The notes below the pieces were generated by a model, which searched no databases, had not been told where the DNA came from, and saw only the letters and a program-made list of their open reading frames with translations. The position numbers and the translations under genes are program-made. This document shows positions 1-13,758 of a DNA stretch of 64,000 nucleotides, in pieces. The stretch lies in the sequence record PV261924.1. One strand, 5' to 3'. How positions within the stretch are numbered: the stretch's first letter is position 1; each line of letters begins with the position of its first letter.

Positions 1-151
1 GTTTGGGGACCTTTGTAGGTTAGACTTGCTGCAATTTCTTTTAAGGGGGGGGGCAAGAAACCATCGATAACCAACCAAACCTTATAACCCGCTTTGCACC
101 GCAACGGCTATAAAACTAAACACAAAAACACTGTGCATTTGCCATACTGTG

Positions 152-194
152 ATTTTAACATATAGGGCCACTGGTTGTCAAGAACTGTGGCCCT
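152..194 (-). promoter_or_regulatory. sigma70-like promoter firing leftward into non-coding sequence
   Basis: TTGACA (176-181), 18 bp, TG-n-TAAAAT (152-157); 8-bp inverted repeat AGGGCCAC/GTGGCCCT (164-171/187-194) brackets the -35. Confidence 0.55.
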
Positions 195-227
195 GCTTCG
201 TTTACACTCAGTCTGGCGACTATATGA

Positions 228-557
228 TCAGAACTGTTGCTCTGTTACGTATTGGCGAACCTCATCAGCCATGTTGTTATCAACTACGAGAAACTTGCGA
301 TCTATGTTGTTATCATCAACTCGCTGGTTGATACCATCCATGGCGCGAACATAGGCACCGAATGTTGACACCACACGTCGCTCAAGCATGTTCAGTTTGG
401 AGGACTGTCCCTGACCTAGCTTAGCGAGTTCAGTGTTATCATACTTGGCACACATTGCGTCAGTGAGAATAAGCCACAGCGGAGTGTCAGTGATAACGTC
501 ATCAATAGCTTGGTATCGGTTGTTGAGTCGTTCGGTGTAGCTGAGAGTGTTAGTCAT
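228..557 (-). CDS. hypothetical protein, 109 aa
   Basis: ORF track; same strand as all neighbours. Confidence 0.7.
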   Translation of the reverse strand: MTNTLSYTERLNNRYQAIDDVITDTPLWLILTDAMCAKYDNTELAKLGQGQSSKLNMLERRVVSTFGAYVRAMDGINQRVDDNNIDRKFLVVDNNMADEVRQYVTEQQF

Positions 558-609
558 TGGTTGAAATAAGGTGGGTTATATAAGGCCTTTATATAGGGCA
601 CTTATGTCA

Positions 610-762
610 TCAGAACTCCAGCGGTTCGAGTGTAGGTTGGGCCTGGGGGATTTGCACCTGTTCGATGTTATCACTGTTCGTAGCGATAGCCTCAAGGATG
701 TTCAGGATTTGAGCACCATTGTTACCCTTACGAAGCAGAGAGATCATCAGATTGCGGGACAT
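610..762 (-). CDS. small cyanophage-type protein, 50 aa (MSRNLMISLLRKGNNGAQILNILEAI...)
   Basis: hand-translated; below track cutoff; resembles small proteins recalled from T4-like cyanophages. Confidence 0.7.
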   Translation of the reverse strand: MSRNLMISLLRKGNNGAQILNILEAIATNSDNIEQVQIPQAQPTLEPLEF

Positions 763-833
763 GTGTTTGTGTAAGTTAGTGTGTGAATTGTGATGAGTTT
801 AATGACATCATCAGGTCAAGCAGTAAGTGTAAC

Positions 834-950
834 TCAGAGCAGCGCTTTGCGTTTGCGATTGATCTGAGAGGGCAGTACAGTAACTGTTACTTTCTTGCCA
901 TTAGCTTTGAGTTCATCAATGGACTTCAGCAGTTGTTGATAGTTGGTCAT
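834..950 (-). CDS. hypothetical peptide, 38 aa (MTNYQQLLKSIDELKANGKK...)
   Basis: hand-translated; ATG lies just downstream of the repeat copy at 975. Confidence 0.6.
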   Translation of the reverse strand: MTNYQQLLKSIDELKANGKKVTVTVLPSQINRKRKALL

Positions 951-1053
951 GATGATTGCCGTGGTTACACTATAGCGGACCTTTGGAGGTGAGTAATTTT
1001 GAAGTCCTCAAAGTGTTACAGATAAGTGATACTGATTTGACAGGATTTGGGGG

Positions 1054-1082
1054 TTGACATTGAGACTTAAGCCTGATAGAAT
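1054..1082 (+). promoter_or_regulatory. sigma70-like promoter on the + strand
   Basis: TTGACA (1054-1059), 17 bp, TAGAAT (1077-1082). Confidence 0.65.
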
Positions 1083-1209
1083 ACGGGGCAAGATGACTAT
1101 AAGATCAGGCCTTTAAGTATCTTCAGAGACCCCAGCTAGTGACTCTGTAACACCTTTCTAGACACTTTTGCAAATCACTTATAAGCATTTAAAAAGCCAT
1201 TTACAACAT

Positions 1210-1245
1210 AAAAAAAGGCAAATAGCAGTATTTATTCACCTTTTT
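1210..1245. terminator. probable bidirectional intrinsic terminator
   Basis: Stem GGCAAATA/TATTCACC (with G-U pairs) flanked by A7 on the left and T5 on the right; directly after the stop of 1252..1518. Confidence 0.55.
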
Positions 1246-1251
1246 GAGACG

Positions 1252-1518
1252 TTATTTTACAGAATGAGACTTTCTTACTCTACGGACTTCATCATCAACT
1301 ACTTCGCCAATTGTAGTGTAAATGTAGTCAGTATTTCCCACCTCACATAGCACTTCATTTGTATCATCTTGATTAAGATAAATTTCATCATTAGATACAT
1401 CATTGAAGTAAAATACATCCTCTTTAGTATAGATGAAGAAAGCACATATAGCATCCTCTCCTTGTTCTTCAATCAGACAATCTACAATAGATTTTAGTTT
1501 AGATAGTGTGTGGTACAT
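1252..1518 (-). CDS. hypothetical acidic protein, 88 aa
   Basis: ORF track. Confidence 0.75.
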   Translation of the reverse strand: MYHTLSKLKSIVDCLIEEQGEDAICAFFIYTKEDVFYFNDVSNDEIYLNQDDTNEVLCEVGNTDYIYTTIGEVVDDEVRRVRKSHSVK

Positions 1519-1521
1519 AAT

Positions 1522-1701
1522 TCAGTGAGTGAAAGGATTAACAGTAGCTCGTGTTACTGGATCACCTAATTGTTCTCTGGTTGGTATATCATCATGAGGA
1601 CGATATGCAGAGATGATAGGTGATAACAAGAGAGCTAATCGTTCATCTAATTGTGTATGTCTGAGGTGATAGATTTGATGGCCTTGCGCAGGGCGGTTCA
1701 T
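1522..1701 (-). CDS. hypothetical protein, 59 aa (MNRPAQGHQIYHLRH...)
   Basis: hand-translated; fills the gap between neighbours. Confidence 0.6.
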   Translation of the reverse strand: MNRPAQGHQIYHLRHTQLDERLALLLSPIISAYRPHDDIPTREQLGDPVTRATVNPFTH

Positions 1702-1731
1702 GATGAATGAAATGAAGAATGATCTGCAGGT

Positions 1732-2046
1732 TCAAACTGTAGTCATCTCCAGATAATCAGCTTCAGTTTGTAACTTCTTACCATTCCAAATATAGATGTC
1801 TGGGTTATCACAAGCACCATAATCTTCAACCTCTCCATCATCATCAAAGGTGACATAATCGCGAACAGAAACTACAACCATTGCGGTCTGATTACCGAGA
1901 TGATTGATACAAGCTTCGAGAGTGTAATCATCAAGATCACCACAAGCTGGAGTCCATTGAATATCAAGATCTTCGTTGCGATCTTCCTCTACAATATAAC
2001 TCTCATCAACAGAAAAGTCAAAGGCTTCAATAGTAGCGAATTCCAT
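1732..2046 (-). CDS. highly acidic hypothetical protein, 104 aa
   Basis: ORF track; directly downstream of repeat copy 2070; 27 D/E versus 4 K/R by hand count. Confidence 0.8.
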   Translation of the reverse strand: MEFATIEAFDFSVDESYIVEEDRNEDLDIQWTPACGDLDDYTLEACINHLGNQTAMVVVSVRDYVTFDDDGEVEDYGACDNPDIYIWNGKKLQTEADYLEMTTV

Positions 2047-2101
2047 GTGATTAGCGTGATTGTACTATAGTGGACGTTTGAAGGTGAGTAACTTTGTAGA
2101 G

Positions 2102-2260
2102 TTAAGATTGGGATACTTTATTGATAACAACTCGATGAGCAGGGTATCTAGCCTCTACTAATTGTCTTATAAAGTCTCTATCAGAACGATCAGATTGAAG
2201 AGAAAACTCATGCCTTCTCCCCTTGTCATCATTCCAATATCCAGTGCAATTGTAAATCAT
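2102..2260 (-). CDS. hypothetical protein, 52 aa (MIYNCTGYWNDDKGRRHEF...EARYP...)
   Basis: hand-translated; start overlaps the stop of the upstream gene. Confidence 0.65.
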   Translation of the reverse strand: MIYNCTGYWNDDKGRRHEFSLQSDRSDRDFIRQLVEARYPAHRVVINKVSQS

Positions 2261-2520
2261 TTGAAGAAATTAAGACGATGTAATTCAGTATAAGCGAAAC
2301 GACGCATATTGTCATCCTCTGTTGTATGATACAAATTAATCATACGCTGACAATAATCAGACCTCTTTGCGATCGGTGTGATACTTTGGCGTGAAGTGTA
2401 GCCAAGGTCATTGTTACCATTGGTGCGAACCTTATTTTTTCCGAAGTTTCCAGATACACGACCAGTTGTTCTCAACTTAGGCTTGATCTTACTGAGGTTA
2501 GAAGTGGCGAAACTTGACAT
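2257..2520 (-). CDS. basic hypothetical protein (likely start MSSFATSNLSK)
   Basis: ORF track 2257..2565; ATG at 2520 preferred because it avoids overlap with the HNH gene. Confidence 0.7.
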   Translation of the reverse strand: MSSFATSNLSKIKPKLRTTGRVSGNFGKNKVRTNGNNDLGYTSRQSITPIAKRSDYCQRMINLYHTTEDDNMRRFAYTELHRLNFFK

Positions 2521-2526
2521 GGTTGA

Positions 2527-2533
2527 ATAAATA
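2527..2533 (+). promoter_or_regulatory. T4-type late promoter for the HNH gene
   Basis: ATAAATA ending about 24 nt upstream of the ATG at 2557. Confidence 0.5.
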
Positions 2534-2556
2534 ATTACAGGTAACTTTGGTGAAGA

Positions 2557-3060
2557 ATGAAACACCTACATCACATCATTCCTCGGTATGAAGGTGGCTC
2601 AGATGAGGCAGATAACCTGGTCGAACTAACACCAACTCAACACAGTATGTGGCACTTTGCTGAATACTTGAGAAAGGGTAATCTCGAAGATTGGTGTGCA
2701 TCACGGATGATACTTGGCGATGTGAATAATCCTGAGTTTAGAAAGAATGCGTCTCAGTTAGGTAATCAAAAGATCAGACACTTACTGGACAATGATAACA
2801 TATACAGGGAGAAAGTGAGTGAGATAGGTAAAAGAAATGGTGTTCTTGGTAATAAGGCTCAGAGAGACAAATTGGCGAAAGAGGGTAGAACAATCGCCGA
2901 ACAATCCTGGATCATTACAACACCGACAGGAGAGGAGTTACAGATAACTAACCTCGCCAAATACTGTCGGGAGAATGATTTACTGAAGCACAAGATGTGT
3001 GAAGTTGCGAAAGGGACATACAAACAACATCGTGGCTATTCAGTGAGAAGATCAGCATGA
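2557..3060 (+). CDS. free-standing HNH homing endonuclease
   Basis: N-terminal HHIIP..GG.D...NLV.L....H...H motif; C-terminal NUMOD/HTH-like DNA-binding tail; opposite strand to neighbours. Confidence 0.85.
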   Translation: MKHLHHIIPRYEGGSDEADNLVELTPTQHSMWHFAEYLRKGNLEDWCASRMILGDVNNPEFRKNASQLGNQKIRHLLDNDNIYREKVSEIGKRNGVLGNKAQRDKLAKEGRTIAEQSWIITTPTGEELQITNLAKYCRENDLLKHKMCEVAKGTYKQHRGYSVRRSA

Positions 3061-3188
3061 ACTTCAGAGTTGTCATCAATTACAGTTACAATTTGTCCGT
3101 CTTGAGTTAGAATTTCATACTGAGTTTGAAATGATGAAATATCAGCCTTTCCAACAATAATAGCAGTGGTGAGGATAAATTCAATCAT
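3036..3188 (-). CDS. hypothetical protein, 50 aa (MIEFILTTAIIVGKADI...)
   Basis: hand-translated; overlaps the HNH 3' end convergently by 25 nt. Confidence 0.55.
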   Translation of the reverse strand: MIEFILTTAIIVGKADISSFQTQYEILTQDGQIVTVIDDNSEVHADLLTE

Positions 3189-3248
3189 CAGTTAAACCTT
3201 TATACAAAAAGAGTAATAAAAAAATGAGAAGAATAAAACCTATGGAGA

Positions 3249-3500
3249 TCATAACTCCCATAGCATTTCATTCATCTCATTCACATCAATGTTAGGATCA
3301 TCCCAACGAACACCATCACCAGTGGTGAAGTCTCCGATGTTGTTCATACAAAGAATGAAGCGATCCCATACACTTTCCAAACCCTCACGGTAAGTTACAC
3401 ATGCCTTGGCAGTGTTGTAGAGAAACTCATCATTGCCGATCCAAAGAGCAGCGTTCCAAGTTTCATAGTTAGACCAACCGTTGTAGGTAGAATTAGACAT
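3249..3500 (-). CDS. small phage protein (TYNGWSNYETWNAALWIGND)
   Basis: ORF track; the YNGW.NYETW motif is recalled from many phage small proteins. Confidence 0.8.
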   Translation of the reverse strand: MSNSTYNGWSNYETWNAALWIGNDEFLYNTAKACVTYREGLESVWDRFILCMNNIGDFTTGDGVRWDDPNIDVNEMNEMLWEL

Positions 3501-3638
3501 AGTAGAAAAAGAAATAAAGGTGGTGATTAAGTGTGGTTCAGAGAAACAAGTCAGAGAAGCAATCTAGAAGAAAGAAGTCTGAGCGAGAAGTCTGAACCCT
3601 TACACCTATGTGGACATTTCGAGGTGAGTAATTCTGTG

Positions 3639-3848
3639 TCAGACCAATTCATACTCGATTGATTTCACACAATAACCTACATCATCAGAAATAAGACTCA
3701 TTAAATGCTCCTCATCTTTGGCATCCCATAAAAAATCTAATGTATCTTCAATGATGCATTCTTGAGTAAATTCGTCTGGAATAGCACAATACGTATCATC
3801 CCAATCAAACTCAATTTCAGTCACTTGATAGAACTTTTTCATTGACAA
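3639..3848 (-). CDS. acidic hypothetical protein, about 69 aa
   Basis: ORF track; stop lies 5 nt before repeat copy 3610. Confidence 0.75.
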   Translation of the reverse strand: MSMKKFYQVTEIEFDWDDTYCAIPDEFTQECIIEDTLDFLWDAKDEEHLMSLISDDVGYCVKSIEYELV

Positions 3849-3982
3849 TCAGGATGAGGTTGAGGTAATGTGGCACATGCATTTTCATGTGCATTGTTGA
3901 TAGATTGTGTGTCCCTTATCGCTAATAACACATTGATAAAAACAACAGCAATAAAGGGAAAAATAAAGAGATGAAGTTTCAT
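3839..3982 (-). CDS. small membrane peptide, 47 aa (MKLHLFIFPFIAVVFINVLLAIRD...CATLPQPHPDCQ)
   Basis: hand-translated; N-terminal TM segment and a C-terminal Cys pair; translationally coupled to neighbours. Confidence 0.65.
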   Translation of the reverse strand: MKLHLFIFPFIAVVFINVLLAIRDTQSINNAHENACATLPQPHPDCQ

Positions 3983-4140
3983 CACATGCCATTCATAAAG
4001 TCATGAATTGCCTCAAGGTATTCTTCCTTTGTTTCAAAGGTTTTGCCGTAGATAGTCTTTGGAAATTCGCCAAGTTTGGCGGGTTGATTGACAGGATCTT
4101 TGCCCTGTGACTTGATTTGATCAGTGTAAGTGTTTCTCAT
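3982..4140 (-). CDS. small cyanophage-type protein, 52 aa (MRNTYTDQ...IYGKTFETKEEYLEAIHDFMNGM)
   Basis: hand-translated. Confidence 0.65.
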   Translation of the reverse strand: MRNTYTDQIKSQGKDPVNQPAKLGEFPKTIYGKTFETKEEYLEAIHDFMNGM

Positions 4141-4175
4141 ACTATAGTGGACCTTTCGAGGTGAGTAATTCTGTG

Positions 4176-4376
4176 TCAGTCTAATCTCTTGAAATGAACT
4201 GAATTAAACTGACCTGATTTGTTCTCTAATGTAATCTTAGTGTACCATGGTTGAATGTCAACACTCTCGACAACATAGCGATGACCAACTATCAAATGAG
4301 ATGGATAATCACTCGATGCCCATAACAACTGTTCATGAGTTGCTCCCTTAAATTCTACTATATCACCTGACTGCAT
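4176..4376 (-). CDS. hypothetical protein, 66 aa
   Basis: ORF track. Confidence 0.75.
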   Translation of the reverse strand: MQSGDIVEFKGATHEQLLWASSDYPSHLIVGHRYVVESVDIQPWYTKITLENKSGQFNSVHFKRLD

Positions 4377-4572
4377 TTATCATATCCTCCCACACTTCTT
4401 CACCCATCATATCACTAATCTCCTCTTGCAAGTCAGTTTCATCATAATCTTTCATATTTGCTTCTATTTGTTCTGCTGCCCACTGACATAGAGTCTTGAG
4501 ATCCATACCATCAACGATTAGCCAGGCATAGTCATTCTTTAGGTTATCAAGTTGTTCAGGTGTGAGTGTCAT
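4363..4572 (-). CDS. acidic hypothetical protein (likely start MTLTPEQL)
   Basis: ORF track 4363..4626; start is uncertain (4572 or 4602) because a terminator lies at 4603-4624. Confidence 0.7.
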   Translation of the reverse strand: MTLTPEQLDNLKNDYAWLIVDGMDLKTLCQWAAEQIEANMKDYDETDLQEEISDMMGEEVWEDMINAVR

Positions 4573-4602
4573 TGGATCAGTGTAATGTGCGACAAAAGAC
4601 AT

Positions 4603-4624
4603 AAAAAAAGAGGGTAAAACCCTC
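4603..4624 (-). terminator. intrinsic terminator
   Basis: GAGGG-TTTTA-CCCTC followed by a T tract. Confidence 0.55.
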
Positions 4625-4967
4625 AAGCAAAGACATAACCAGAGACAAAATCTTCGACGTTGTAGACTTTACCAGTCACAGAAGATTCACCAATGAACTT
4701 GCGAACATACCAGAGAAAGTCTTTCTGGAAAACACCTTCACCAGCGATACAATACTCTTCGCAAAGTGCATTGAGTCGTGATTTAGTGGTGTTAGATTGC
4801 CAACCACCGTCAAAGATAGTCAGGCTAGTGTCATCAACCAGAGCAATTTTATTGCCGTGGAGATAAACAGTGGAAACACCCATGTTGGTGACAACTTCAG
4901 TGTTTCCAGATTTCCAGTTCTTGTTACCATTGATGGCTTCAATCATCTGGGATTCAATCTTACGCAT
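4623..4967 (-). CDS. cyanophage-type hypothetical protein, 114 aa (MRKIESQM...VYLHGNKIA)
   Basis: ORF track; directly downstream of repeat copy 4993. Confidence 0.8.
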   Translation of the reverse strand: MRKIESQMIEAINGNKNWKSGNTEVVTNMGVSTVYLHGNKIALVDDTSLTIFDGGWQSNTTKSRLNALCEEYCIAGEGVFQKDFLWYVRKFIGESSVTGKVYNVEDFVSGYVFA

Positions 4968-5019
4968 GTGGTTAAGTGGTTCCTACACTATAGTGGACAT
5001 TTGGAGGTGAGTAATTCTG

Positions 5020-5637
5020 TCACTCGACAATCTGTTCAACTTGAGTATTGTCACCACCAAAGTTAGTGACTTCATGCAACTTACTTCCAGCAACGGTACC
5101 ACCAACCATCAAAGAAATTGTGGAGATAAGTACAACCCAGAAACGAAGGTGAAAGTTTTTCTCTTGAGTAAACTTAGACCCATATTTGTAACCAACAAAG
5201 GCACCACCAAACATACCAACAAGAGGTGCCAATGCGTAGGCGATATATCCACCAATACCAATGGCAGCAAGAATCAACAATCCACCAATATCAGCACCAG
5301 AAAGTGAAGAACCCTCACCACTGTTAGTGTTGTTGTAACTGACACTATGTGTGCCACTAGATGTTACACCACCACTGAATGAATTGTTGATAGATTGTTG
5401 AGTTTGTTCGGCAGCACTTGTTCTATTTGCTCTTGTTTCTTCACGTTTTTGTTTCTCTTTCTCTCCCCATATCTGAGAGTCAATACATTTAACACCAGAA
5501 ATCTTGGCGCCAGGATAACGAGCTTCAAATATTTCCTTGGCACCAGCTGCGGTGTTTGGCCCTTCACAAGTGACATAATGTCCTGAATATCCATTCACAG
5601 AGTGAATACGACCTTGCCAAGTGTGAACGTTAGCCAT
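5020..5637 (-). CDS. membrane protein, 205 aa, with C-terminal hydrophobic helices
   Basis: ORF track; hydrophobic segments GGLLILAAIGIGGYIAYALAPLVGMFGGAFVG and FWVVLISTISLMVGGTVAG; flanked by repeat copies 4993 and 5667. Confidence 0.8.
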   Translation of the reverse strand: MANVHTWQGRIHSVNGYSGHYVTCEGPNTAAGAKEIFEARYPGAKISGVKCIDSQIWGEKEKQKREETRANRTSAAEQTQQSINNSFSGGVTSSGTHSVSYNNTNSGEGSSLSGADIGGLLILAAIGIGGYIAYALAPLVGMFGGAFVGYKYGSKFTQEKNFHLRFWVVLISTISLMVGGTVAGSKLHEVTNFGGDNTQVEQIVE

Positions 5638-5706
5638 GATAAAAGAATTGCGTTGGTTGTACTATAGTGGACTTTTGAAGGTGAGTAATTCTAAAGAGTG
5701 ACAAGT

Positions 5707-5807
5707 GGCCTTACATTGTATCAAGGTAACCACACCAAAACATGATACAAATGCCACACATTATGGGCCTTACATGAGTGTTGTAACCACCACAGAAATT
5801 ACACTCA
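5707..5807 (-). repeat. two tandem stem-loop units, each followed by TGTAAGGCC
   Basis: Stems 5716-5723/5743-5750 and 5775-5781/5801-5807; GGCCTTACA at 5707 and 5766; GTAACCAC at 5726 and 5783. Confidence 0.55.
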
Positions 5808-5818
5808 ATGCCCATCAA

Positions 5819-6001
5819 TCAAAAAGGATTAGTCCATTTGTGGTGTTGTTGTTTCGTAATTCTACCGTCATCAAGTAAACTATCAACCACATTTAGGAAG
5901 ACAGCCCACTTCATGTCACGAGTGAAAGTAATACCTTCCTCTTTGCAATGAGTGTTCACAGTATTACGAACAACGCGTTGAACTTCAGTTTTTGTCATCA
6001 T
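5819..6001 (-). CDS. hypothetical protein, 60 aa
   Basis: ORF track. Confidence 0.75.
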   Translation of the reverse strand: MMTKTEVQRVVRNTVNTHCKEEGITFTRDMKWAVFLNVVDSLLDDGRITKQQHHKWTNPF

Positions 6002-6055
6002 TTTTGTCCTTGTTTGGTTTAGTTGGTTTCGTCCAATAATCGCGGTAAATTGACA

Positions 6056-6208
6056 TCAATTAGTGGGAAAGTTACGACAGACGGCATCACAAAGCATACG
6101 AATTACATTATCTTTATACTCAACTTCACCAAAGTTAGATTCAATAATACAATCAATGTCCTCCATGAGTTGTTCACGAGCGGTCAACATTTCGAGTTGG
6201 TCCATCAT
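6056..6208 (-). CDS. small cyanophage-type protein, 50 aa (MMDQLEMLTAREQLMEDIDCII...)
   Basis: hand-translated; coupled start/stop with the upstream gene. Confidence 0.7.
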   Translation of the reverse strand: MMDQLEMLTAREQLMEDIDCIIESNFGEVEYKDNVIRMLCDAVCRNFPTN

Positions 6209-6363
6209 TTAGAAAGAAGAAAACGACGTGCTTCGTAGGCTTGAAATTGTGAATTGAATGTGGCAATCTTGGTCATATCTTCACGCCAATATAATGCCCA
6301 TTTGTGTGACCCTATCACACCTTTAGCGATGATAGGGTTATCAATACCAAGTGGATAAGTCAT
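6205..6363 (-). CDS. small cyanophage-type protein, 52 aa (MTYPLGIDNPII...HKWALYW)
   Basis: hand-translated; ATGA overlap with the upstream gene. Confidence 0.7.
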   Translation of the reverse strand: MTYPLGIDNPIIAKGVIGSHKWALYWREDMTKIATFNSQFQAYEARRFLLSK

Positions 6364-6521
6364 TCTTCAATAACAGATTGGATTACAAATTGTGGTTGAT
6401 TTCGATTACAAGTTGCAATTGCTTCCTCTTTACTAGAAGCAATGTAACCTAGACAATCTCTCATTGTCCAACCATTAGCACGATGATGTTCACCGTAGAT
6501 CAGAAACTTAGATTCTTTCAT
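6360..6521 (-). CDS. hypothetical protein (likely start MKESKF)
   Basis: ORF track 6360..6563; ATG at 6521 avoids overlap with the upstream gene. Confidence 0.7.
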   Translation of the reverse strand: MKESKFLIYGEHHRANGWTMRDCLGYIASSKEEAIATCNRNQPQFVIQSVIEE

Positions 6522-6525
6522 GTTA

Positions 6526-6753
6526 TCAACCTCCGTAGACTTCTTCAGCCATAGGTGTATCACTCATGCGATCGAGGTGATCCCAAAGTGTGTTTTTTTC
6601 ACCAAACATTTCTTGGAAGAGATCAAGATCTTGACGATCATATTGATCTTTAACAATCCAAATCTCTTGTTCAATCCATGCAAGTTCTGCACGAGCTTTA
6701 TCTAGTTTCTTACGAAGTTCGTAAAGCTTTTGGTTTCTTTCTGTGAGTGTCAT
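6526..6753 (-). CDS. coiled-coil hypothetical protein, 75 aa
   Basis: ORF track; downstream of repeat copy 6777. Confidence 0.75.
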   Translation of the reverse strand: MTLTERNQKLYELRKKLDKARAELAWIEQEIWIVKDQYDRQDLDLFQEMFGEKNTLWDHLDRMSDTPMAEEVYGG

Positions 6754-6803
6754 AATGATTCAGTGGTTACACTATAGTGGACATTTCGAGGTGAGTAATT
6801 CTG

Positions 6804-7394
6804 TCAGCCCAACAATACCTGAGGAAAGTATGGAGTCAGGTCAGAATCTACAATCTTATGTTCACAACTCACAAATTTCTTTCGTGATACATTCTTGACA
6901 TAGATCAGGTGGTTAATGTCAATATCTTTGTAATCTTGTGGTCCACGTTTACGAATAAGACCAAAGGCTTCGTTCTCTTCGCGAGTGGAAACAACGACCT
7001 TTGAAAGTTTATCAATGTCTGTCAAAAAGTGAGTGATAAGATCATAAGAACGATCTTCCACAAACTTATCATAATGATATGCAAATATAAACTTTGAACC
7101 ACTACGAACTCCGCCGAAGTGTTCTTTAGTCAAACTGTGTCCGCCTTTGACTTTCATATCAATTACACTGGACAAAGTTTTGTCAGGATATTCACTCCAC
7201 TTGACAAATGCTTGTGGTGTCAACAATGCACCAGTGTCATCGATTTTATGAGAACCAGCCCAACAAATACCACCAGAAAGATCCTCTACAACCTTGAACA
7301 TGGTCTCACGGGTGTAGATATTGACCTGCTCATCTGTCAAGGACATAATCAGTTTGAGCTGATTAGTTAGGAATCTTTTAGTGGTGGCAGTCAT
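6804..7394 (-). CDS. hypothetical protein, 196 aa
   Basis: ORF track; single gene between repeat copies 6777 and 7416. Confidence 0.8.
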   Translation of the reverse strand: MTATTKRFLTNQLKLIMSLTDEQVNIYTRETMFKVVEDLSGGICWAGSHKIDDTGALLTPQAFVKWSEYPDKTLSSVIDMKVKGGHSLTKEHFGGVRSGSKFIFAYHYDKFVEDRSYDLITHFLTDIDKLSKVVVSTREENEAFGLIRKRGPQDYKDIDINHLIYVKNVSRKKFVSCEHKIVDSDLTPYFPQVLLG

Positions 7395-7439
7395 CGGTTT
7401 AATGTGGTTACTTAAGTGGACATTTAGAGGTGAGTAATT

Positions 7440-7643
7440 CTATTTGAGCTCAATTCGGTCAATCAAGACCATACCAAGGTCAAAATATAGATCATCATCA
7501 ATGTCACCAAGTTTTTCACGGAGAGCATCACCAACCATGTCGGTCATCATCTCCATATAACGCTCATCTTCATAGATTTGATTGATAATATCCTCCTTCA
7601 ATGCGTCGGCGAGTTTGGATACACATTTTGCAGAAAGTGCCAT
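7440..7643 (-). CDS. acidic hypothetical protein (likely start MALSAKCV)
   Basis: ORF track 7440..7691; stop directly abuts repeat copy 7416. Confidence 0.7.
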   Translation of the reverse strand: MALSAKCVSKLADALKEDIINQIYEDERYMEMMTDMVGDALREKLGDIDDDLYFDLGMVLIDRIELK

Positions 7644-7644
7644 G

Positions 7645-7725
7645 TCAGTTGTTAGTGAGAATGTTGATGATTGTGATGAATAATGCACCACACATAACGT
7701 AGTAGATGAAACGAAAAATAACCAT
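7645..7725 (-). CDS. 26-aa hydrophobic micropeptide (MVIFRFIYYVMCGALFITIINILTNN)
   Basis: hand-translated; exactly fills the gap with coupled start/stop. Confidence 0.45.
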   Translation of the reverse strand: MVIFRFIYYVMCGALFITIINILTNN

Positions 7726-8054
7726 TATCGTAAGTAAAGATAACCACCTGCCCAATCAGCACGTTCATAACATTGTTCGCGTGATTCAATCCTCAGAAGA
7801 TTGTAACGAACACCTTTGGCTGGTGCTTTGAATGATGCAGGTTTGTAAACATCACCAGTCTTCTTATCAACAAAGGCATGAACACTGCGGGAGTTACCAT
7901 CAGTCTCCATGATCAGTTTGTGATACTTACGACCAGATTCAATGTAAAACTTGTAACCATCAGACTTGTAATTGTTACGGCGAAGGAAATCTTCCATCAA
8001 CACACCGCAAAGAATGTTAGCGTGTTTCTCAACAATTTGTGTGGGAGTGATCAT
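7725..8054 (-). CDS. cyanophage-type hypothetical protein (GRKYHKL...SVHAFVDKKTGDVYKPAS..APAK)
   Basis: ORF track; downstream of repeat copy 8077. Confidence 0.8.
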   Translation of the reverse strand: MITPTQIVEKHANILCGVLMEDFLRRNNYKSDGYKFYIESGRKYHKLIMETDGNSRSVHAFVDKKTGDVYKPASFKAPAKGVRYNLLRIESREQCYERADWAGGYLYLR

Positions 8055-8211
8055 AGCTTTGTGTGGTTACACTATTGTGGACCTTTGGAGGTGAGTAATT
8101 CTGAAGACCGACGATTGATGGCGGCTACTTCTACACTACTACAAGGAATCAGAACCTTTTGATTTACCCACACAATCTTGCGGGTGGTAATATCTGATGC
8201 CATATTGTAAG

Positions 8212-8532
8212 TCATTCAAGTTCCTCCACAGGGTTGGCGTAAAGATCATTCTCTGTGGTCACATCAGTGAACACATCTTCATCATCATCAGAAAATACCA
8301 GATACAAAATCTCATCATTATCCTTGACATTCCACTCTTGATAGAGAGAAATAATGTCACCAGATACCCTATCTTTATTTTTCTTCTTCTCTAAAGATTT
8401 ACCTAGTTTCTTGATACGTTTCTCATATGAATCTTGCTGATCATTGGCAAGATATTCAACTCTGTCAAGATTGAAGACAAACTTATTACCTTCAATCTCA
8501 AAGGTTTCGGAATTTGCGGTATCGAAATTCAT
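8212..8532 (-). CDS. hypothetical protein, 106 aa
   Basis: ORF track; own promoter at 8554-8581. Confidence 0.75.
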   Translation of the reverse strand: MNFDTANSETFEIEGNKFVFNLDRVEYLANDQQDSYEKRIKKLGKSLEKKKNKDRVSGDIISLYQEWNVKDNDEILYLVFSDDDEDVFTDVTTENDLYANPVEELE

Positions 8533-8553
8533 AATAATAATGTGGTTAATTCA

Positions 8554-8589
8554 ATTGTATCCTATAAACTACCGATGTCAATCGGTAGT
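8554..8589 (-). promoter_or_regulatory. sigma70-like promoter with a palindrome centred on the -35
   Basis: TTGACA (8576-8581), 16 bp, TACAAT (8554-8559); inverted repeat ACTACCGAT-N4-ATCGGTAGT. Confidence 0.6.
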
Positions 8590-8781
8590 GGTTGCTTTAC
8601 CCACAAGAGATGGGCCTTTCCAAACCAAACCATCTTCTTCCCATTTACTGATAAAGGCACGACGAAGCATCATCAGTTCATCATATCGTGATTGTTGAGA
8701 TGACGTATAGTTGAAGTTTTGTGCCCTCCAAGTCTTACGCAGTTCTTGAAGTTCACGGATGATTTGAGAAGAGTTGTTCAT
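8578..8781 (-). CDS. cyanophage-type hypothetical protein (likely start MNNSSQII)
   Basis: ORF track 8578..8895; ATG at 8781 lies just downstream of repeat copy 8803. Confidence 0.75.
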   Translation of the reverse strand: MNNSSQIIRELQELRKTWRAQNFNYTSSQQSRYDELMMLRRAFISKWEEDGLVWKGPSLVGKATTTD

Positions 8782-8824
8782 GATTTGACTGGTTACAATA
8801 AAGTGGACGTTTGGAGGTGAGTAA

Positions 8825-9376
8825 TTATGAACCGAGACAGAATTGTCTGAGTTTCCGAGTAATAGAGGGTGCAGTGATGTCTTCCGACACAACATATGCC
8901 TCTAATTCTTCCAGAATAGTATCTTCATGAAGACCCTTGGCTTTCAGTCGCGAACGTAACTGAGCAAGACGTTCTTCATCATAAGATGGAGACAAAGACA
9001 AGAATTTAGCAAGTTCTTCTTCATTGAACATCGTTGTAGTTTTACCATCAGCAATATAACCACTTGCACAATCTTGGATTACATGATGTGCCTCATGTCG
9101 CAGTGTGTTGTAGTCATTCTCGGTCCATTTGTATTGTTTATTTGAACCTGGAATCATCTTGTCTTGACAGATAACTAACATTCCAGAATAAGGATAGTAA
9201 ATACCATCCATTTTCTTTCTGTCATTACAATGATTGAGATGATTGACCAATGTAACTACACCAAGGTCTTGCAAAGTGTTCCACAATTCATTATGGTCAT
9301 CATGAATGTCAGCCTTGGCAATACCAGGAGTGAGAACTGCGGTTGCTGCGAGAAGAGAAAGAAATAGTTTTTTCAT
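8825..9376 (-). CDS. exported HExxH zincin-like protein
   Basis: signal peptide MKKLFLSLLAATAVLTPGIAKA; RHEAHHVIQDC motif. Confidence 0.7.
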   Translation of the reverse strand: MKKLFLSLLAATAVLTPGIAKADIHDDHNELWNTLQDLGVVTLVNHLNHCNDRKKMDGIYYPYSGMLVICQDKMIPGSNKQYKWTENDYNTLRHEAHHVIQDCASGYIADGKTTTMFNEEELAKFLSLSPSYDEERLAQLRSRLKAKGLHEDTILEELEAYVVSEDITAPSITRKLRQFCLGS

Positions 9377-9381
9377 GTTAA

Positions 9382-9633
9382 TCAGAAGTCAGGTCCAAGA
9401 ATTTCCATAAGATCAGCAGGATCAGTACTGCCGAGATAAGTCTCAGTAAAGAGAATTGCTAGTTCTCTACTACCAAACTCAATCTCTACATTATCCCAGA
9501 TCCTGTCATTATATACTTTGACAGTGATAGGTTGAACACCCGATTCTTCAATTGTTTCAGAAATATTATAATAAATGTCATCACCATCACTACAATCAAA
9601 GTCATAAGTGACTTTTACAGTTGACATAATCAT
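9382..9633 (-). CDS. acidic hypothetical protein
   Basis: ORF track 9382..9696; GGAGG precedes ATG at 9633/9627. Confidence 0.75.
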   Translation of the reverse strand: MIMSTVKVTYDFDCSDGDDIYYNISETIEESGVQPITVKVYNDRIWDNVEIEFGSRELAILFTETYLGSTDPADLMEILGPDF

Positions 9634-9830
9634 TTTGATTCCTCCAGAGTAATAGTACGATACTGATTGACAATGGTCTCTAGTTCCATAACACAATGTT
9701 GCATTGTGGCACGAGAGTAACCAGTAGCATAAGGATAACCCTGATCAGGGTTATTCAATGCATCATGTGATACATTCACTCCATCTTGAAGACTTTCGAT
9801 GATTGTGATTAGTTTGGTGTCGATGTTCAT
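9630..9830 (-). CDS. hypothetical protein (likely start MNIDTKL)
   Basis: ORF track 9630..9869; start placed after the terminator. Confidence 0.7.
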   Translation of the reverse strand: MNIDTKLITIIESLQDGVNVSHDALNNPDQGYPYATGYSRATMQHCVMELETIVNQYRTITLEESK

Positions 9831-9840
9831 GATAGGTAAT

Positions 9841-9879
9841 AAAAAACCGCTGTAGGGGATCAGAGACACCTTACAGCGG
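9841..9879 (-). terminator. intrinsic terminator
   Basis: CCGCTGTAAGG-loop-CCCTACAGCGG followed by T6, just after the stop of 9887..10096. Confidence 0.7.
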
Positions 9880-9886
9880 AGAATAG

Positions 9887-10096
9887 TCAGACAGTGGTCT
9901 TAGGACCAAACTCACGTTGATAAGAATCTTTCACATACTCAACAGTTTGTTGAATGAAAGGCTTGACATAATCAACGAGTTGTTTTACATCTTCAATGAG
10001 CTTGTTAGTCTCATACTGATGAATCTCCCAACGTACTTTGATGTCGGCAAGATACTGTTGACGAGTAATAAGAACTTGAGGAGTGGTTTGAGTCAT
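9887..10096 (-). CDS. cyanophage-type hypothetical protein, 69 aa
   Basis: ORF track; downstream of repeat copy 10120. Confidence 0.8.
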   Translation of the reverse strand: MTQTTPQVLITRQQYLADIKVRWEIHQYETNKLIEDVKQLVDYVKPFIQQTVEYVKDSYQREFGPKTTV

Positions 10097-10146
10097 AGAA
10101 GTGTGGTCTCTACACTATAGGGGACATTTGGAGGTGAGTAATTCTG

Positions 10147-10347
10147 TCACCGCTTCTTTTTCTTGAGTTTGTTAATCAATGTCATCGCAGATTGTCTGTT
10201 ACGACATACTTTAACAATGTTACCATTGTGAACAACAACAAGTTTAGTTGTTGAACCAGCCAATGGAATTGCAGCCAGGTAACCATCACCCACGATAATA
10301 GGTAATGTTCCTGGTTTACAATCAAGGATGTGTGAGTTAGTAAACAT
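10147..10347 (-). CDS. hypothetical protein, 66 aa
   Basis: ORF track; coupled to the helicase stop. Confidence 0.7.
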   Translation of the reverse strand: MFTNSHILDCKPGTLPIIVGDGYLAAIPLAGSTTKLVVVHNGNIVKVCRNRQSAMTLINKLKKKKR

Positions 10348-11525
10348 TAGCGACGAGTAACTGAGTCGTACATTTCACCTTTCTCGAAGACAATATCAAC
10401 ACAACGTTGTAGTGCCTTCTCGGTAGATACACCGACATTGTTGTAAACGGGGACACACAGCATACCGTAGGTTTTGGTAGAAGAACCCACACGAATCACA
10501 CGACCAACAGTTTGAAGAAGCTCAATACTGTCCATGTTACGGAGGAAGATAACCGCCTCAAGTTCAGACACGTTGATACCTTCAGACAGAATAGAACGGT
10601 GAAGGACAACAAACTTCTTTGACTTGTCACGACCCCATGCATTCAGAGTATTGAAAAACTCTTCACGGGTCACTTTCTGACCATCGATAACAGCACCAGT
10701 CTTGGCGGTGATATACAGATAAGAGTAACCACGTTCTGTCAACTGATCAGCAAAATCAGTCATGAACAGGTTCTGCAACTGTCGTGTGGTCTTAACACAA
10801 ACCAGAATCTTCTTGATGTCAATCTGGTCAATAGATGCGAGGACATTGTTACCCTCAAGGTGAGGAGTGAGAGACTTTTTGTCAATCTTGTCCATCTCAA
10901 TCACCTTGACCTTAGGTGGAAGAATGTAACCATTCTGAACCAGATCAGGTGCAGACACACGTGCAATCACTTGACCATAAGTCTCAGTCCAGTTCATGCC
11001 TGGTTTCTTCACAGTCACACTGGTTTTACGAGTTGCAGTGAAGTAGTAACAACGATCTGCATGTTTACTGAAATACTCAGTGGGACCGTAGAAGTTACGT
11101 TGAACAGAGTTATGTGCCTCGTCAAAGTAAATCGTATCTACAGCAATACCAGACTCTTGTACACGATGAAGAGAATGATATGTGGTGAAGATAATAACGT
11201 GTTCACGCATAGTTTGACACATATCAACAAATAATTTGATACGGTCAGACTTAGTGGTACTGAAATGTTTTGTCTCTCCACTATGAACATGGAGAACATT
11301 TGCATTGGTGATATGTTCCAGATACTCTGATGACAGTTGTTCTGCCAACAGAATACGAGGAGCGACAACAACAATAGTGCGAGGAACTTTTATCTCAAAT
11401 CGTCTCACTGCGTCCATGATAGCGATAAGAGTCTTGCCGCCACCAGTAGGAACAATGATTTGACCGATAGAGTTATTACGAAGAGCGTAAACAGCGTCCT
11501 GTTGATGAGGGCGGAGTTTGATCAT
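10347..11525 (-). CDS. superfamily 2 (DEAH) helicase, type III restriction Res-like
   Basis: motifs PTGGGKT (I), APRILL (Ia), DEAH (II), TAT (III), LSEGINV (V), QTVGRVIR (VI). Confidence 0.9.
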   Translation of the reverse strand: MIKLRPHQQDAVYALRNNSIGQIIVPTGGGKTLIAIMDAVRRFEIKVPRTIVVVAPRILLAEQLSSEYLEHITNANVLHVHSGETKHFSTTKSDRIKLFVDMCQTMREHVIIFTTYHSLHRVQESGIAVDTIYFDEAHNSVQRNFYGPTEYFSKHADRCYYFTATRKTSVTVKKPGMNWTETYGQVIARVSAPDLVQNGYILPPKVKVIEMDKIDKKSLTPHLEGNNVLASIDQIDIKKILVCVKTTRQLQNLFMTDFADQLTERGYSYLYITAKTGAVIDGQKVTREEFFNTLNAWGRDKSKKFVVLHRSILSEGINVSELEAVIFLRNMDSIELLQTVGRVIRVGSSTKTYGMLCVPVYNNVGVSTEKALQRCVDIVFEKGEMYDSVTRR

Positions 11526-11568
11526 TTATGTGGTGTATGTAATAGTGTGGACGTTTGAAGGTGAGTAA

Positions 11569-12450
11569 TTATGAACCGAACCCATTATGGAAGTTAGCAT
11601 ATGCAAACTCGGTACGATCTACCAGTTTAACACATCCATAGGTGTTAGAGTGGAAAACATATCCTTCACCACCACATTTCTTACCATTAGGAAGATAAGA
11701 TTGTGGTGCGTCGGTGACAATCAGACTGTCCATAATATCCAGTTTGATTTCCATCACAAACTGATACAGATTAGCGAGATGTTGACAACCAAGAATGTCA
11801 GTCAGGGTTGCGTCATCAATATACTGACCAGATTTGATGAGTGCGTTGATAGCAGTCTTAGCCTTAGCAGCTTCCTTATCAGTCAGAAACTTGATACCCT
11901 TAGGGTTAATCTTAGGGACAGATCCTTGGGGAGGAATACGATCAACAGAAGGTTGCACCCACTTGACCATAGTGGTGTCTTCAAATGTTTCCATCAAAGG
12001 TGAACACACATTCTTCCACATTTCCTCATGAACGTCAACAACTGTGTGAGGAGCGATTACAAGTTTCTGGTCAATTGCTTCGTCAAAGACATACGTCAGA
12101 GTGTTCTGAGTAAACACATCAGTACGACCGAAACCAAGCCAATCACCCCAGTAAATCTTCTCGGTACGAGGAAGATACTTGAAACAATGAGAGAGAATAT
12201 CTACAACTTCGATTTGATGACCAAAATGGGTGAAGATGTCGTCCATTGAGTAACACAGACGGATCTTTTTCTTATTAAATGCGGACTTCGTGCAACAGAA
12301 CCATTTACCATTGGCAGGATTAGTACCCCACACAAGTGACATACCATCCATTTTCATACTGATATGTGCTCGGTCATACAGAAGATCAAAGACCGACAAA
12401 TCGCCAGTCAAAATGCAGTCCTCTGGGTGCTCAATATGTGTGGAAGTCAT
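11569..12450 (-). CDS. phage protein with ATP-dependent ligase/nucleotidyltransferase-like motifs
   Basis: KMDG (motif I), YWGD (III-like), EGYVF (IV), VKLV (V). Confidence 0.55.
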   Translation of the reverse strand: MTSTHIEHPEDCILTGDLSVFDLLYDRAHISMKMDGMSLVWGTNPANGKWFCCTKSAFNKKKIRLCYSMDDIFTHFGHQIEVVDILSHCFKYLPRTEKIYWGDWLGFGRTDVFTQNTLTYVFDEAIDQKLVIAPHTVVDVHEEMWKNVCSPLMETFEDTTMVKWVQPSVDRIPPQGSVPKINPKGIKFLTDKEAAKAKTAINALIKSGQYIDDATLTDILGCQHLANLYQFVMEIKLDIMDSLIVTDAPQSYLPNGKKCGGEGYVFHSNTYGCVKLVDRTEFAYANFHNGFGS

Positions 12451-12501
12451 AATTTAGTGTGGTCTCGTACTATAGATGACCTTTCAAGGTGAGTAATTGC
12501 G

Positions 12502-12645
12502 TCAGGGGAGAACTACCCAGACTTTGTTACCATTTTTCATTGTAGTATGGTTATCAACATATTGTTTTGCTCTCGCAATTGTCATACCATGGTTAGTTCT
12601 CAGATAAGATCTTGCTTCTGTGACTGTATTAAACAGTCGCATCAT
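12502..12645 (-). CDS. hypothetical protein, 47 aa (MMRLFNTVTEARSYL...)
   Basis: hand-translated; stop 3 nt before repeat copy 12475. Confidence 0.6.
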   Translation of the reverse strand: MMRLFNTVTEARSYLRTNHGMTIARAKQYVDNHTTMKNGNKVWVVLP

Positions 12646-12653
12646 CTTCTGTG

Positions 12654-13316
12654 TCATTTTAGAGCCTTTGCAGCAGCATGTGCTTTTGCGGTCAGTTGAA
12701 TTGCCTCTTTCTTGTTTGGTTTTCTACCATGTTTCTTCTCAAAGTCAGCACGAAGTTGTGACTTTACATCTTTTCTACTCTTACCTGTCTCTTTATTACG
12801 AGCAGCATCTCTTTCTTTTCTTGTCATACCACCACCATCGTCAGTCTTCCAACTACGACGTGCTTTTGCTGGTTCAGTCTTCTTAGGTTCTGCCTTCTTA
12901 GTCTTCAACATCTGAGTTGCTTTCTTTTCAGCATCTTTAGTTGATGTGGTGTCTTTCTTAACTTCAGTACCTGCCTTTCTTGCAGCAATACGTGCTCTTG
13001 CTGCTGCCTTTCTTTCTGCCTTTGCCTTATCCGCATAAGTTTGTTTGACTTCTGCAGAACCACGTTCTTTTTCAGGTTGTTGTTCTCTTTCAGAACGTGC
13101 CTTAGTTGTACCTACGTCTTTACGAGTCTTATATTCACCAACAGGTGCCATCTTACCACCACCAACTGCCTTCATTCGTGGTGATTGACCAGCCTTTCTT
13201 CTTGTTTCAGTTTCTCTCTTAGGTTGTTTCCTACCACCTTCACCAGTTCTACGAATCTGTGCACCTTTGAGGTCAGGATCGTATGCTTCTGATAGGAAAT
13301 CTCTTAATGTTTTCAT
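12654..13316 (-). CDS. Lys/Arg-rich protein, probable capsid internal protein
   Basis: N-terminus MKTLRDFLSE resembles the T4 IP capsid-targeting sequence MKTYQEFIAE; very basic body. Confidence 0.6.
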   Translation of the reverse strand: MKTLRDFLSEAYDPDLKGAQIRRTGEGGRKQPKRETETRRKAGQSPRMKAVGGGKMAPVGEYKTRKDVGTTKARSEREQQPEKERGSAEVKQTYADKAKAERKAAARARIAARKAGTEVKKDTTSTKDAEKKATQMLKTKKAEPKKTEPAKARRSWKTDDGGGMTRKERDAARNKETGKSRKDVKSQLRADFEKKHGRKPNKKEAIQLTAKAHAAAKALK

Positions 13317-13504
13317 TCTTCTACAACTGTAGCATTTTTGAACCCACCAGTTTTACCATCAACGTTGGCAACCTTTGCATCTAAACCCTCACGGGTTGCA
13401 TAAGTTACTTTTTCTGATGATTGATCAGACCATCTATTACCACCAGCATAATATACTGTAATACTAGGATCAATCAATGATGGTTTAGTTGCGTAAAAGG
13501 CCAT
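13313..13504 (-). CDS. small late protein, 63 aa
   Basis: ORF track; late promoter immediately upstream. Confidence 0.75.
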   Translation of the reverse strand: MAFYATKPSLIDPSITVYYAGGNRWSDQSSEKVTYATREGLDAKVANVDGKTGGFKNATVVEE

Positions 13505-13510
13505 GATTGG

Positions 13511-13539: not shown

Positions 13540-13547
13540 TGGTATTA

Positions 13548-13724: not shown

Positions 13725-13758
13725 GAGAACTCCTGATTGACTACCTTAAAACTATAGT

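Follow-up and report, generated by a model that had tools for sequence, protein, structure and literature searches.

A repeated element with a shared core and a genome-specific address, a probable phage-specific promoter class, in T4-like cyanophages

The window analyzed here, a stretch of 64,000 nucleotides from the genome of Synechococcus phage RN05-S (PV261924.1; 206,548 bp), a T4-like cyanomyovirus of Synechococcus sp. MW02, contains 13 copies of a 24-bp repeat on a single strand between positions 975 and 12498. The first 13 kb of the window are 100% identical to record positions 1-13000. From comparison of sequences we consider it probable that this repeat is the upstream part of an intergenic transcription-initiation element of about 55 nt lying on the minus strand, and that the element belongs to a phage-specific class of promoters carrying a genome-specific address that is read by a trans-acting factor. 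An earlier note on the window had offered two readings of the repeat, a phage-specific activator or promoter class and a recombination handle. The former is the better supported of the two, by the common orientation of the copies, their intergenic placement, their fixed spacing to ATG, purifying selection on particular columns and an address that tracks the genome. Recombination as the primary role fares badly, with copies that are not homogenized, many indel breaks elsewhere and one swap that removes a copy.

A pattern search found exactly the 13 co-oriented copies that had been listed, where 0.01 are expected by chance, and the stretch claimed to be invariant, AGGTGAGTAA, is unchanged in 13/13. 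A position weight matrix derived from these copies with 14 nt of flank was run over the whole 206,548-bp genome; the copies score 43-61 bits and every other position falls below 10. A pattern search allowing up to three mismatches gave no further copy in the remaining 142.5 kb outside the window. Thus the repeat is real, discrete and confined to 975-12498. All copies lie within one 11.5-kb block of small open reading frames (ORFs), which is the hyperplastic region between the tail-fiber region and the baseplate module of RN05-S, and which by its position is pre-replicative.

Apart from a homing endonuclease (2557-3060, plus), the annotated genes in 1-18000 all run on the minus strand, and the earlier note had read the unit in reverse. 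The -10 sequence that it placed after the repeat is absent on that side; instead TATAGT lies directly 3' of the motif in gene orientation. The stop codons that it saw beside the copies on the plus strand are the TAG within ACTATAG. In 10/13 copies there is nevertheless a true upstream stop, whose distance to the motif is -2 to +8 nt. Two copies were said to share an extension, and the shared AATTATGAACCGA is real, but on the coding strand it reads ...GGT TCA TAA and its ATG is no start codon. The first two A's of the motif complete an upstream TAA, which explains why the extension is common to these two copies.

We number the element in gene orientation, with the 24-mer followed by TATAGT at positions 25-30 and a purine at 31. 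The order within a unit on the minus strand is upstream stop, AAT, WCAR, AATTACTCACCT-YN-AAA-N-GTCCAC, TATAGT, purine, TAACCAC and ATG. The element is longer than 24 bp, extending for about 55 nt from the AAT at -16 to the CAC ending at +38. Its anatomy was examined in 129 unique sites together with 157 further unique metagenome sites, and the flanking columns are conserved even though they played no part in the selection of sites. AAT occupies -16 to -14, with T at -14 in 103/126 sites, and WCAR is conserved at -4 to -1. On the other side of the 24-mer, the final T of TATAGT (T30) is present in 281/286 sites, position 31 is a purine in 286/286, and TAACCAC is conserved at 32-38. The first ATG that opens an ORF lies 21-25 nt past the 24-mer in 97 of the 129 unique sites, and this fixed geometry is reproduced in the independent set of 157 new sites.

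In RN05-S the thirteen copies head thirteen short units of 1-6 small genes apiece. With the deposited annotation the ATG lies 21-29 nt past the 24-mer in 10/13 copies, and in 11/13 when ORF 834-950 is counted; in a typical unit it is about 15-19 nt beyond TATAGT. There are two exceptions, one copy where ATG abuts TATAGT and another with a leader of 109 nt. The copies, all on the minus strand, are as follows.

961-1002, minus: copy 1; 24-mer 975-998, TATAGT 969-974, leader box, 59.5 bits; heads the unannotated ORF 834-950 (minus, 38 aa), whose ATG is at the canonical 24 nt
2056-2097, minus: copy 2; 24-mer 2070-2093, variant AGTTAC...; heads gene 1732-2046
3596-3637, minus: copy 3; 24-mer 3610-3633, hexamer ATAGGT; followed by a structured 109-nt leader and then gene 3249-3500
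4133-4174, minus: copy 4; 24-mer 4147-4170; ATG of gene 3982-4140 abuts TATAGT
4979-5020, minus: copy 5; 24-mer 4993-5016; heads gene 4623-4967 (Pfam Kyano_Gp96)
5653-5694, minus: copy 6; 24-mer 5667-5690; heads gene 5020-5637; unit missing in the sibling phage RB11-B
6763-6804, minus: copy 7; 24-mer 6777-6800, 60.8 bits; heads gene 6526-6753 (MTLTERN... family)
7402-7443, minus: copy 8; 24-mer 7416-7439, hexamer TTAAGT; heads gene 6804-7394; upstream stop abuts the motif
8063-8104, minus: copy 9; 24-mer 8077-8100, hexamer AATAGT; heads gene 7725-8054 (DUF7717)
8789-8830, minus: copy 10; 24-mer 8803-8826, hexamer TTTATT; heads gene 8578-8781; TAA stop of gene 8825-9376 overlaps the first two motif bases
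10106-10147, minus: copy 11; 24-mer 10120-10143; heads gene 9887-10096
11533-11574, minus: copy 12; 24-mer 11547-11570, hexamer ACTATT; heads helicase gene 10347-11525; motif overlapped by the TAA stop of gene 11569-12450
12461-12502, minus: copy 13, the first in the direction of transcription; 24-mer 12475-12498, variant ...GTCATC; heads gene 11569-12450 (DUF6267, KxDG ligase-like)

The GenBank record has no annotation over 763-1251, around ORF 834-950. An annotated coding sequence of 47 aa (8072-8215, minus) runs through copy 9 and its hexamer, and is either spurious or a gene overlapping the promoter of the next unit.

The start codon can also lie directly against the hexamer. Among 529 unique core sites the triplet following TATAGT is GTA in 292, ATG in 127 (24%), ATA in 74 and GTG in only 4. 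In 120/127 sites the ORF that begins with the abutting ATG runs for 40 codons or more, and a long ORF is in frame with it in 110/124 sites compared with 114/360 at sites having another triplet. Coding conservation extends up to the abutting ATG in several families, and in contig L217 five of eight units have no start codon other than this one. The start codon at position 31 is under selection. Leaders are either absent (0 nt) or about 14 nt and longer, a bimodal distribution; such bimodality and an almost exclusive use of AUG rather than GUG are typical of leaderless mRNAs. The leaders that are present are rich in A and C (11% G), with a Shine-Dalgarno-like 4-mer in only 9/226 (4%). The one leaderless-mRNA candidate in RN05-S is gene 3982-4140 (minus; 52 aa, ...TIYGKTFETKEEYLEAIHDFMNGM, PHROG 649), and the position of its start is shared by homologs in L010, L020 and SynMITS9220M01. 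With fair confidence we favor a transcription start at or just before position 31 over one at the site expected for sigma70; TATAGT would then occupy about -6 to -1, which is not the geometry of a sigma70 promoter.

The RN05-S form of the element is restricted in its distribution. Among 50,697 phage records it occurs in numbers only in four phages of MW02 (RN05-S, RB11-B, S-B05 and S-B43), with a trace in SynMITS9220M01. In IMG/VR there are 23 stretches with exact matches, 17 of which are arrays of 2-12 co-oriented copies. A 20-base pattern was matched at least 120 times among marine metagenome contigs but not once in bacterial and archaeal genomes totaling 596 Gbp, a search space in which chance alone would give about one match. 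Mimicry of a host promoter was considered and rejected, as there is no match in 185,579 species genomes. Across 80 metagenome loci with 224 sites, copies are spaced a median of 714 bp apart and always share one strand within a contig; in all, co-oriented arrays are found in more than 240 marine viral and metagenome contigs. The element is found only in phages. In S-B43 (MN018232.1 193641-213993, L006) the array is broken by plus-strand tail-fiber-like and carbohydrate-binding genes, with an unrelated region joined upstream; this is either a genuine rearrangement or an assembly problem.

Comparison between lineages shows that the element is bipartite, with a core common to many lineages and an address of 12-14 nt directly upstream of it. 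The usual core is AAAGTGTCCC-TATAGT followed by RTRA(G/C)CAC, which in the RN05-S group takes the form AAA-N-GTCCAC-TATAGT-GTAACCAC. The address is AATTACTCACCT(YN) in the RN05-S group, AAGGGGGGTCGC in S-SM2, and ACTCTGGGGCCT, TGTTAGTAACCT and more in other lineages. In one syntenic block SynMITS9220M01 has TGTTACTCACCT-CT-AAAGTGTCCC-TATAGT and S-SM2 has AAGGGGGGTCGC-CT-AAAGCGTCCC-TATAGT, elements of equal length with a common 3' framework and unrelated 5' 12-mers. Viral contigs were then fetched by the 3' core alone, giving at least 120 stretches, of which the 38 loci with three or more sites were analyzed. The core AAAGTGTCCC-TATAGT-(G/A)T(A/G)A(G/C)CAC is universal across the 38 loci. Each contig has a uniform 12-mer, and more than 15 discrete classes of 12-mer are seen across the 38. 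The identity of each segment was compared over 497 sites between paralogs in the same contig, orthologs in different contigs and unrelated pairs.

12-mer: paralogs 0.883, orthologs 0.557, unrelated pairs 0.521
YN dinucleotide: paralogs 0.714, orthologs 0.406, unrelated pairs 0.386
first 8 leader bases: paralogs 0.652, orthologs 0.696, unrelated pairs 0.582

The leader thus shows the reverse order, its orthologs being more alike than its paralogs, and one gene family has at least 14 different 12-mers in front of it. These comparisons point to the RN05-S repeat as one allele of a genome-specific address set upon a shared core. In three IMG/VR contigs (L214, L196 and L170) a lone foreign address stands in an otherwise uniform array, as with one AATTACTCACCT among five TAACTGGGCCCC in L214. 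These foreign-address units are likely to be recent moves of promoter-plus-gene cassettes between lineages. Address positions 4-5 vary within contig in L010, L011, L020 and L025 of IMG/VR (AATTAC, AATAAC, AATCAC, AATACC, AATAGC), and this may be an intermediate of relaxed specificity between address classes.

The pattern of selection within the element was examined after the loci had been oriented and their ORFs called and clustered into families. The syntenic backbone is strong, and copies precede the same gene families across contigs. At the degenerate positions 13, 14, 18, 22, 23, 26, 29 and 31-38, orthologous copies are clearly more alike than paralogous ones, while paralogs are no more alike than unrelated pairs. 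Thus the copies have been inherited with their downstream genes and have not been homogenized, and the invariant columns are under purifying selection. The lack of homogenization argues against gene conversion within the RN05-S group, and against recombination as the reason for the repeat.

The latter possibility needs to be weighed, as the element might be mainly a homology patch or site for the gain, loss and shuffling of cassettes, in the manner of PeSL or integrons, with promoter activity secondary. Modularity, which underlay the description of the block as an array of gene cassettes, is real. Adjacency in gene order is broken in 37.8% of pairwise comparisons at junctions with an element and in 16.5% at other junctions, an approximately twofold difference, and 28/39 junction types with an element are ever broken compared with 32/79 without. 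Relatives have extra units each with its own copy (units 159 and 160 of L027, for example), and the foreign addresses within arrays also speak for the transfer of cassettes between lineages. Alignment of RN05-S with RB11-B places four ends of homology blocks right at the upstream boundary of a copy (3638, 5018, 5701 and 12505), yet homology also ends at plain gene junctions (1246/1528, 3981 and 8784), and two indels are insertions of homing endonucleases. In one replacement a copy and its gene are swapped for a gene without a copy, and in RB11-B a two-gene insertion beside copy 13 adds no copy. Moreover, a site for recombination needs no fixed distance to ATG, no strict strand bias and no invariant purine at position 31, and the tolerance of operon boundaries for insertions could by itself account for the twofold enrichment. 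The analogy with integrons fails, with folding showing no inverted repeats and no integrase annotated in the genome. Given also that the degenerate columns follow orthology, we think it improbable that recombination is what the repeat is for. Each unit is self-contained, having both element and genes, and so can act as an exchangeable cassette as well, with recombination probably a by-product rather than the function. HNH-type homing endonucleases are found at different sites in the two arrays, at 2557-3060 (plus) in RN05-S and at 15396-15878 of L005 in RB11-B.

Several points weigh against a promoter of a phage-specific class with its start at position 31. The assignment of promoter function comes from sequence alone, and the early timing only from synteny with other T4-like cyanophages. 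The foreign addresses in some arrays indicate that a mismatched address is at least tolerated. Similarity within a genome reaches weakly into the flanks, and slow gene conversion, rather than co-evolution with a factor, could in principle have made the address uniform within a genome. The in-frame selection on the abutting ATG could come from read-through transcripts. Pfam scans of the block, of the window's large ORFs and of genes annotated as 'sigma' or 'regulator' revealed no RNA polymerase, no additional sigma factor and no DNA-binding domain. Finally, in the RN05-S group ATTACT lies 17 bp upstream of TATAGT, and 61% of RN05-type sites have a C-A dinucleotide exactly 7 nt past the hexamer; an ordinary sigma70 promoter that used TATAGT for its -10 would have this appearance.

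The last point is the basis of a second alternative, an ordinary strong host-type sigma70 promoter in which ATTACT serves as a weak -35 of T4 style, the start of transcription is at the C-A about 7 nt on, and the remainder of the element is conserved by ancestry. ATTACT-N17-TATAGT does resemble the T4-type early consensus TTTACW-N17-TAYWAT (PMC4122927), and TATAGT is the -10 of the canonical promoters of RN05-S. However, other lineages have G-rich 12-mers at the corresponding place, with AAGGGGGGACGT, ACTCTGGGGCCT, TAACTGGGCCCC and others, none of which is -35-like, and the invariant columns are kept by selection and not by ancestry. The selected abutting ATG, which is the sole start of most units in some genomes, would precede a start site of this kind. 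The repeat was said to lack TTGACA, and indeed none of the 13 copies is called by a sigma70 consensus scan; ATTACT matches TTGACA at 3/6 positions. We regard this alternative as unlikely.

The canonical promoters that had been cited for comparison do exist, all on the minus strand, at 16176-16148, 16884-16856, 49824 and 50769. These TTGACA-N17-TATAGT promoters lie with 21-26 nt between hexamer and ATG, and two of the leaders contain AGGAG. Because canonical promoters with longer, AGGAG-bearing leaders are present in the same phage, the repeat element is a separate class. A further canonical promoter, TTGACA-16-TACAAT at 8554-8581 (minus), lies inside the array before gene 8212-8532, so that the two promoter classes are interleaved in the block; its leader also has AACCAC. 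The best sigma70-type match of the first 18 kb, TTGACA-17-TAGAAT with an upstream TG, lies at 1054-1082 on the plus strand, within a 253-nt unannotated gap upstream of copy 1. It opposes all the neighboring genes, and may drive an antisense or small RNA.

A third alternative is that the element acts in RNA. A long polycistronic RNA made from upstream promoters would be cleaved just past UAUAGU to give the 5' ends, including the leaderless AUG. Conservation stops exactly where a start codon can sit, and the element is strand-specific. Terminator-like hairpins are at chance level in the 18 kb with none beside the copies, so read-through between units is expected, and there are canonical promoters upstream of or inside the array (16176, 13779 and 8581). 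On the other hand the element is unstructured, as the earlier note had held in denying it a stem-loop: six copies folded with their flanks gave z-scores of -0.64 to +1.59 with no common hairpin. About 40 conserved single-stranded positions far exceed the needs of known RNase sites, the genome encodes no complementary guide sequence, and the hexamer is the same as the -10 of the canonical promoters. The -16 sub-element and the address reach into and across upstream stops, as would a site in DNA. We therefore give cleavage of RNA little credence. The related idea that the element is an RNA structure or a member of a known RNA family was set aside, with no significant fold and no matching family in Rfam.

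Two further candidates were rejected. Readings as NtcA (GTA-N8-TAC), sigma54 or extracytoplasmic-function-type sites do not fit consistently across lineages, as judged from sequence. Avoidance of modified GC was suggested by the S-B43 cmoX/cmoA pair, which makes 5-glycylcarboxymethyl-cytosine at GC sites (PMC12783734). The RN05-S-type element has 6-7-fold fewer GC dinucleotides than its flanks, but as there is effectively one consensus this has P of about 0.3. Since GC does occur in the G-rich addresses of other lineages, avoidance was rejected as a general rule. In RN05-S a C5-cytosine methylase-family gene adjoins a gene of S-adenosylmethionine-methyltransferase fold at 126660-128499 (L004 16660-18499). 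On the strength of the resemblance of this pair to cmoX/cmoA, the DNA of RN05-S is probably hypermodified.

Returning to the phage-specific promoter that we favor, its mechanism can be outlined. A conserved component of the transcription machinery would read the core, and a lineage-specific trans-acting factor would read the address and confer recognition specific to the phage. Such a factor would most simply be a phage protein, either injected with the DNA or made very early. Transcription would begin at or just before the invariant purine past TATAGT, and the products would be leaderless mRNAs (24% of sites) or mRNAs with A/C-rich leaders of about 15-19 nt lacking a Shine-Dalgarno sequence. 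As to what reads the address, a co-evolving protein is the simplest inference; conversion causing slow concerted evolution may, on the timescale that separates lineages, have produced the same pattern. A guide RNA was considered and rejected, the genome containing no antisense 12-mer beyond chance near-matches. In the Pfam scans of block, large and regulator ORFs only gp33 and RegA were recognizable, and PHROGs assigns the proteins of the block to 'unknown function' only. The 27 ORFs scanned, among them the large ones in the window, gave no RNA_pol domain, although virion proteins of 4,337 aa and 2,539 aa encoded elsewhere in the genome were outside the scan and a divergent domain could escape it.

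A wider proposal is more speculative, and we put it forward as possible but doubtful. A large clade of marine T4-like cyanophages might start its host-takeover genes in a manner unlike that of sigma70, from a core ending in CTATAGT with the start directly after it and with leaderless or very short-leadered mRNAs. A fast co-evolving factor, perhaps delivered in the virion, would read the genome-specific address of 12-14 bp, making the early promoters private to each lineage.

The element can be compared with known systems of phage gene control. The genes alt, modA, modB, motA and asiA are missing from cyanomyoviruses, whose control of early and middle genes has been described as unclear (PMC2984593). 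The RN05-S element would share with T4 middle promoters a phage-specific box, read by a phage factor, that replaces the -35 and lies beside a short conserved downstream element. It differs in having no TGCTT, in an address that varies among closely related lineages, and in a likely start directly past TATAGT and not 7 nt beyond a -10, and MotA and AsiA domains are absent from the Pfam scans.

There is also a likeness to the promoters of the T7 group (T7, T3, SP6 and K11), which are long, information-rich and identical throughout a genome, with an upstream part that differs between phages. They too have an initiation core ending ...CTATAG and a conserved initially transcribed sequence, with the start right after TATA(G). 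The SP6 core, GTGACACTATAG, resembles GTGTCCCTATAG of the RN05-S element. In contrast, no single-subunit RNA polymerase gene was found in the ORFs scanned, and none is known in T4-like cyanophages. The variable part lies at about -30 to -17 here, whereas the specificity region of the T7 group lies at -12 to -8. The resemblance may be coincidental.

PeSL elements are defined by an AT-rich region, a stem-loop, a sigma70 -35/-10 and a Shine-Dalgarno sequence with ATG (Comeau 2014, PMC4122927; also Arbiol 2010). Like PeSL and PmSL, the RN05-S element is repeated, co-oriented and intergenic, ends at the start codon of a small ORF, differs in sequence between phage lineages, and occupies a hyperplastic region near the indels and replacements that distinguish siblings; with PmSL it also shares a -10 paired with a non-sigma70 upstream box. 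Unlike PeSL it has no stem-loop and no -35, with a Shine-Dalgarno sequence in 4% of leaders, and its copies are not homogenized. It therefore misses three of the four sequence features of PeSL, namely the stem-loop, a sigma70 -35/-10 about 17 bp apart and the Shine-Dalgarno sequence. Dense PeSL arrays are absent from cyanophage S-PM2 (PMC4503421). Integron cassettes have attC inverted repeats and a nearby integrase, and are mostly promoterless; the RN05-S element has neither feature and itself looks promoter-like.

Another related system comes from cyanophages themselves. Doron et al. 2016 (ISME J 10:1437), working on Syn9 and P-TIM40, reportedly described a novel element that controls early genes and is both frequent and conserved among the genomes and metagenomes of cyanophages. 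The two elements are alike in belonging to T4-like cyanomyoviruses without alt, modA, modB, motA and asiA, in lying in a block of small ORFs of no assigned function, and in being a non-host-like upstream element beside host-like TTGACA/TATAAT promoters. In the syntenic block of Syn9 (gp55-gp93; L033, 43-54 kb) we find a AAGGTGGCACA / AAGTGTCCAC box, about 30 nt that is often hairpin-like, TATTCTATAAGAGTCAAAGG and ATG, and the architecture of the Bellamy block (L031) is similar. Only the AAGTGTCCAC-like piece is common to the RN05-S element, and Syn9 has no abutting TATAGT or recognizable genome-wide 12-mer. The piece of about 30 nt in Syn9 and Bellamy is often a GC hairpin with a T-run, and is PeSL-like in this terminator-like hairpin.

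Searches of the literature with exact strings of the motif gave nothing relevant, and those genome papers of the sibling phages that were located do not describe the repeat. Nor is the motif of Doron et al. 2016 quoted in the citing papers and reviews consulted. Phage-specific classes of promoter are already known; the genome-specific address and the leaderless geometry are the likeliest parts to be new. T4-like cyanophages are among the most abundant viruses of the ocean and lack every protein by which T4 is known to retarget the host polymerase (PMC2984593), and the element makes their recognition of early promoters directly testable. It is information-rich, is present in hundreds of environmental contigs and in no cellular genome, and divides cleanly into core and address, so that the natural series of addresses predicts which protein should co-vary. 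If the wider, more speculative proposal is correct, the element would be a new route to early-promoter recognition in phages without Alt, Mod, MotA and AsiA, and possibly a barrier or filter to the exchange of genes among co-infecting phages. It also provides a sequence marker for units and true start codons (leaderless or mis-called ORFs) in the ORFan-rich hyperplastic regions of cyanomyoviruses, a tool for spotting promoter-plus-gene cassettes recently swapped between lineages, and candidate orthogonal promoter parts for marine Synechococcus.

The leader of copy 3 is of a different kind from the others. It is about 109 nt long (3500-3609) and contains no conserved ORF. It looks like the result of an insertion into the usual GTAA/CCAC leader, which reads TATAGTGTAA followed by the inserted GGGTTCAG...about 50 nt...CTGAACC and then ACAC. 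Within it (3500-3595, minus) a conserved stem of 8 bp, GGTTCAGA...TCTGAACC, encloses the variable section of about 50 nt, and the orthologs in L005, L007, L010 and L020 provide one compensatory A-U/U-A pair in the stem.

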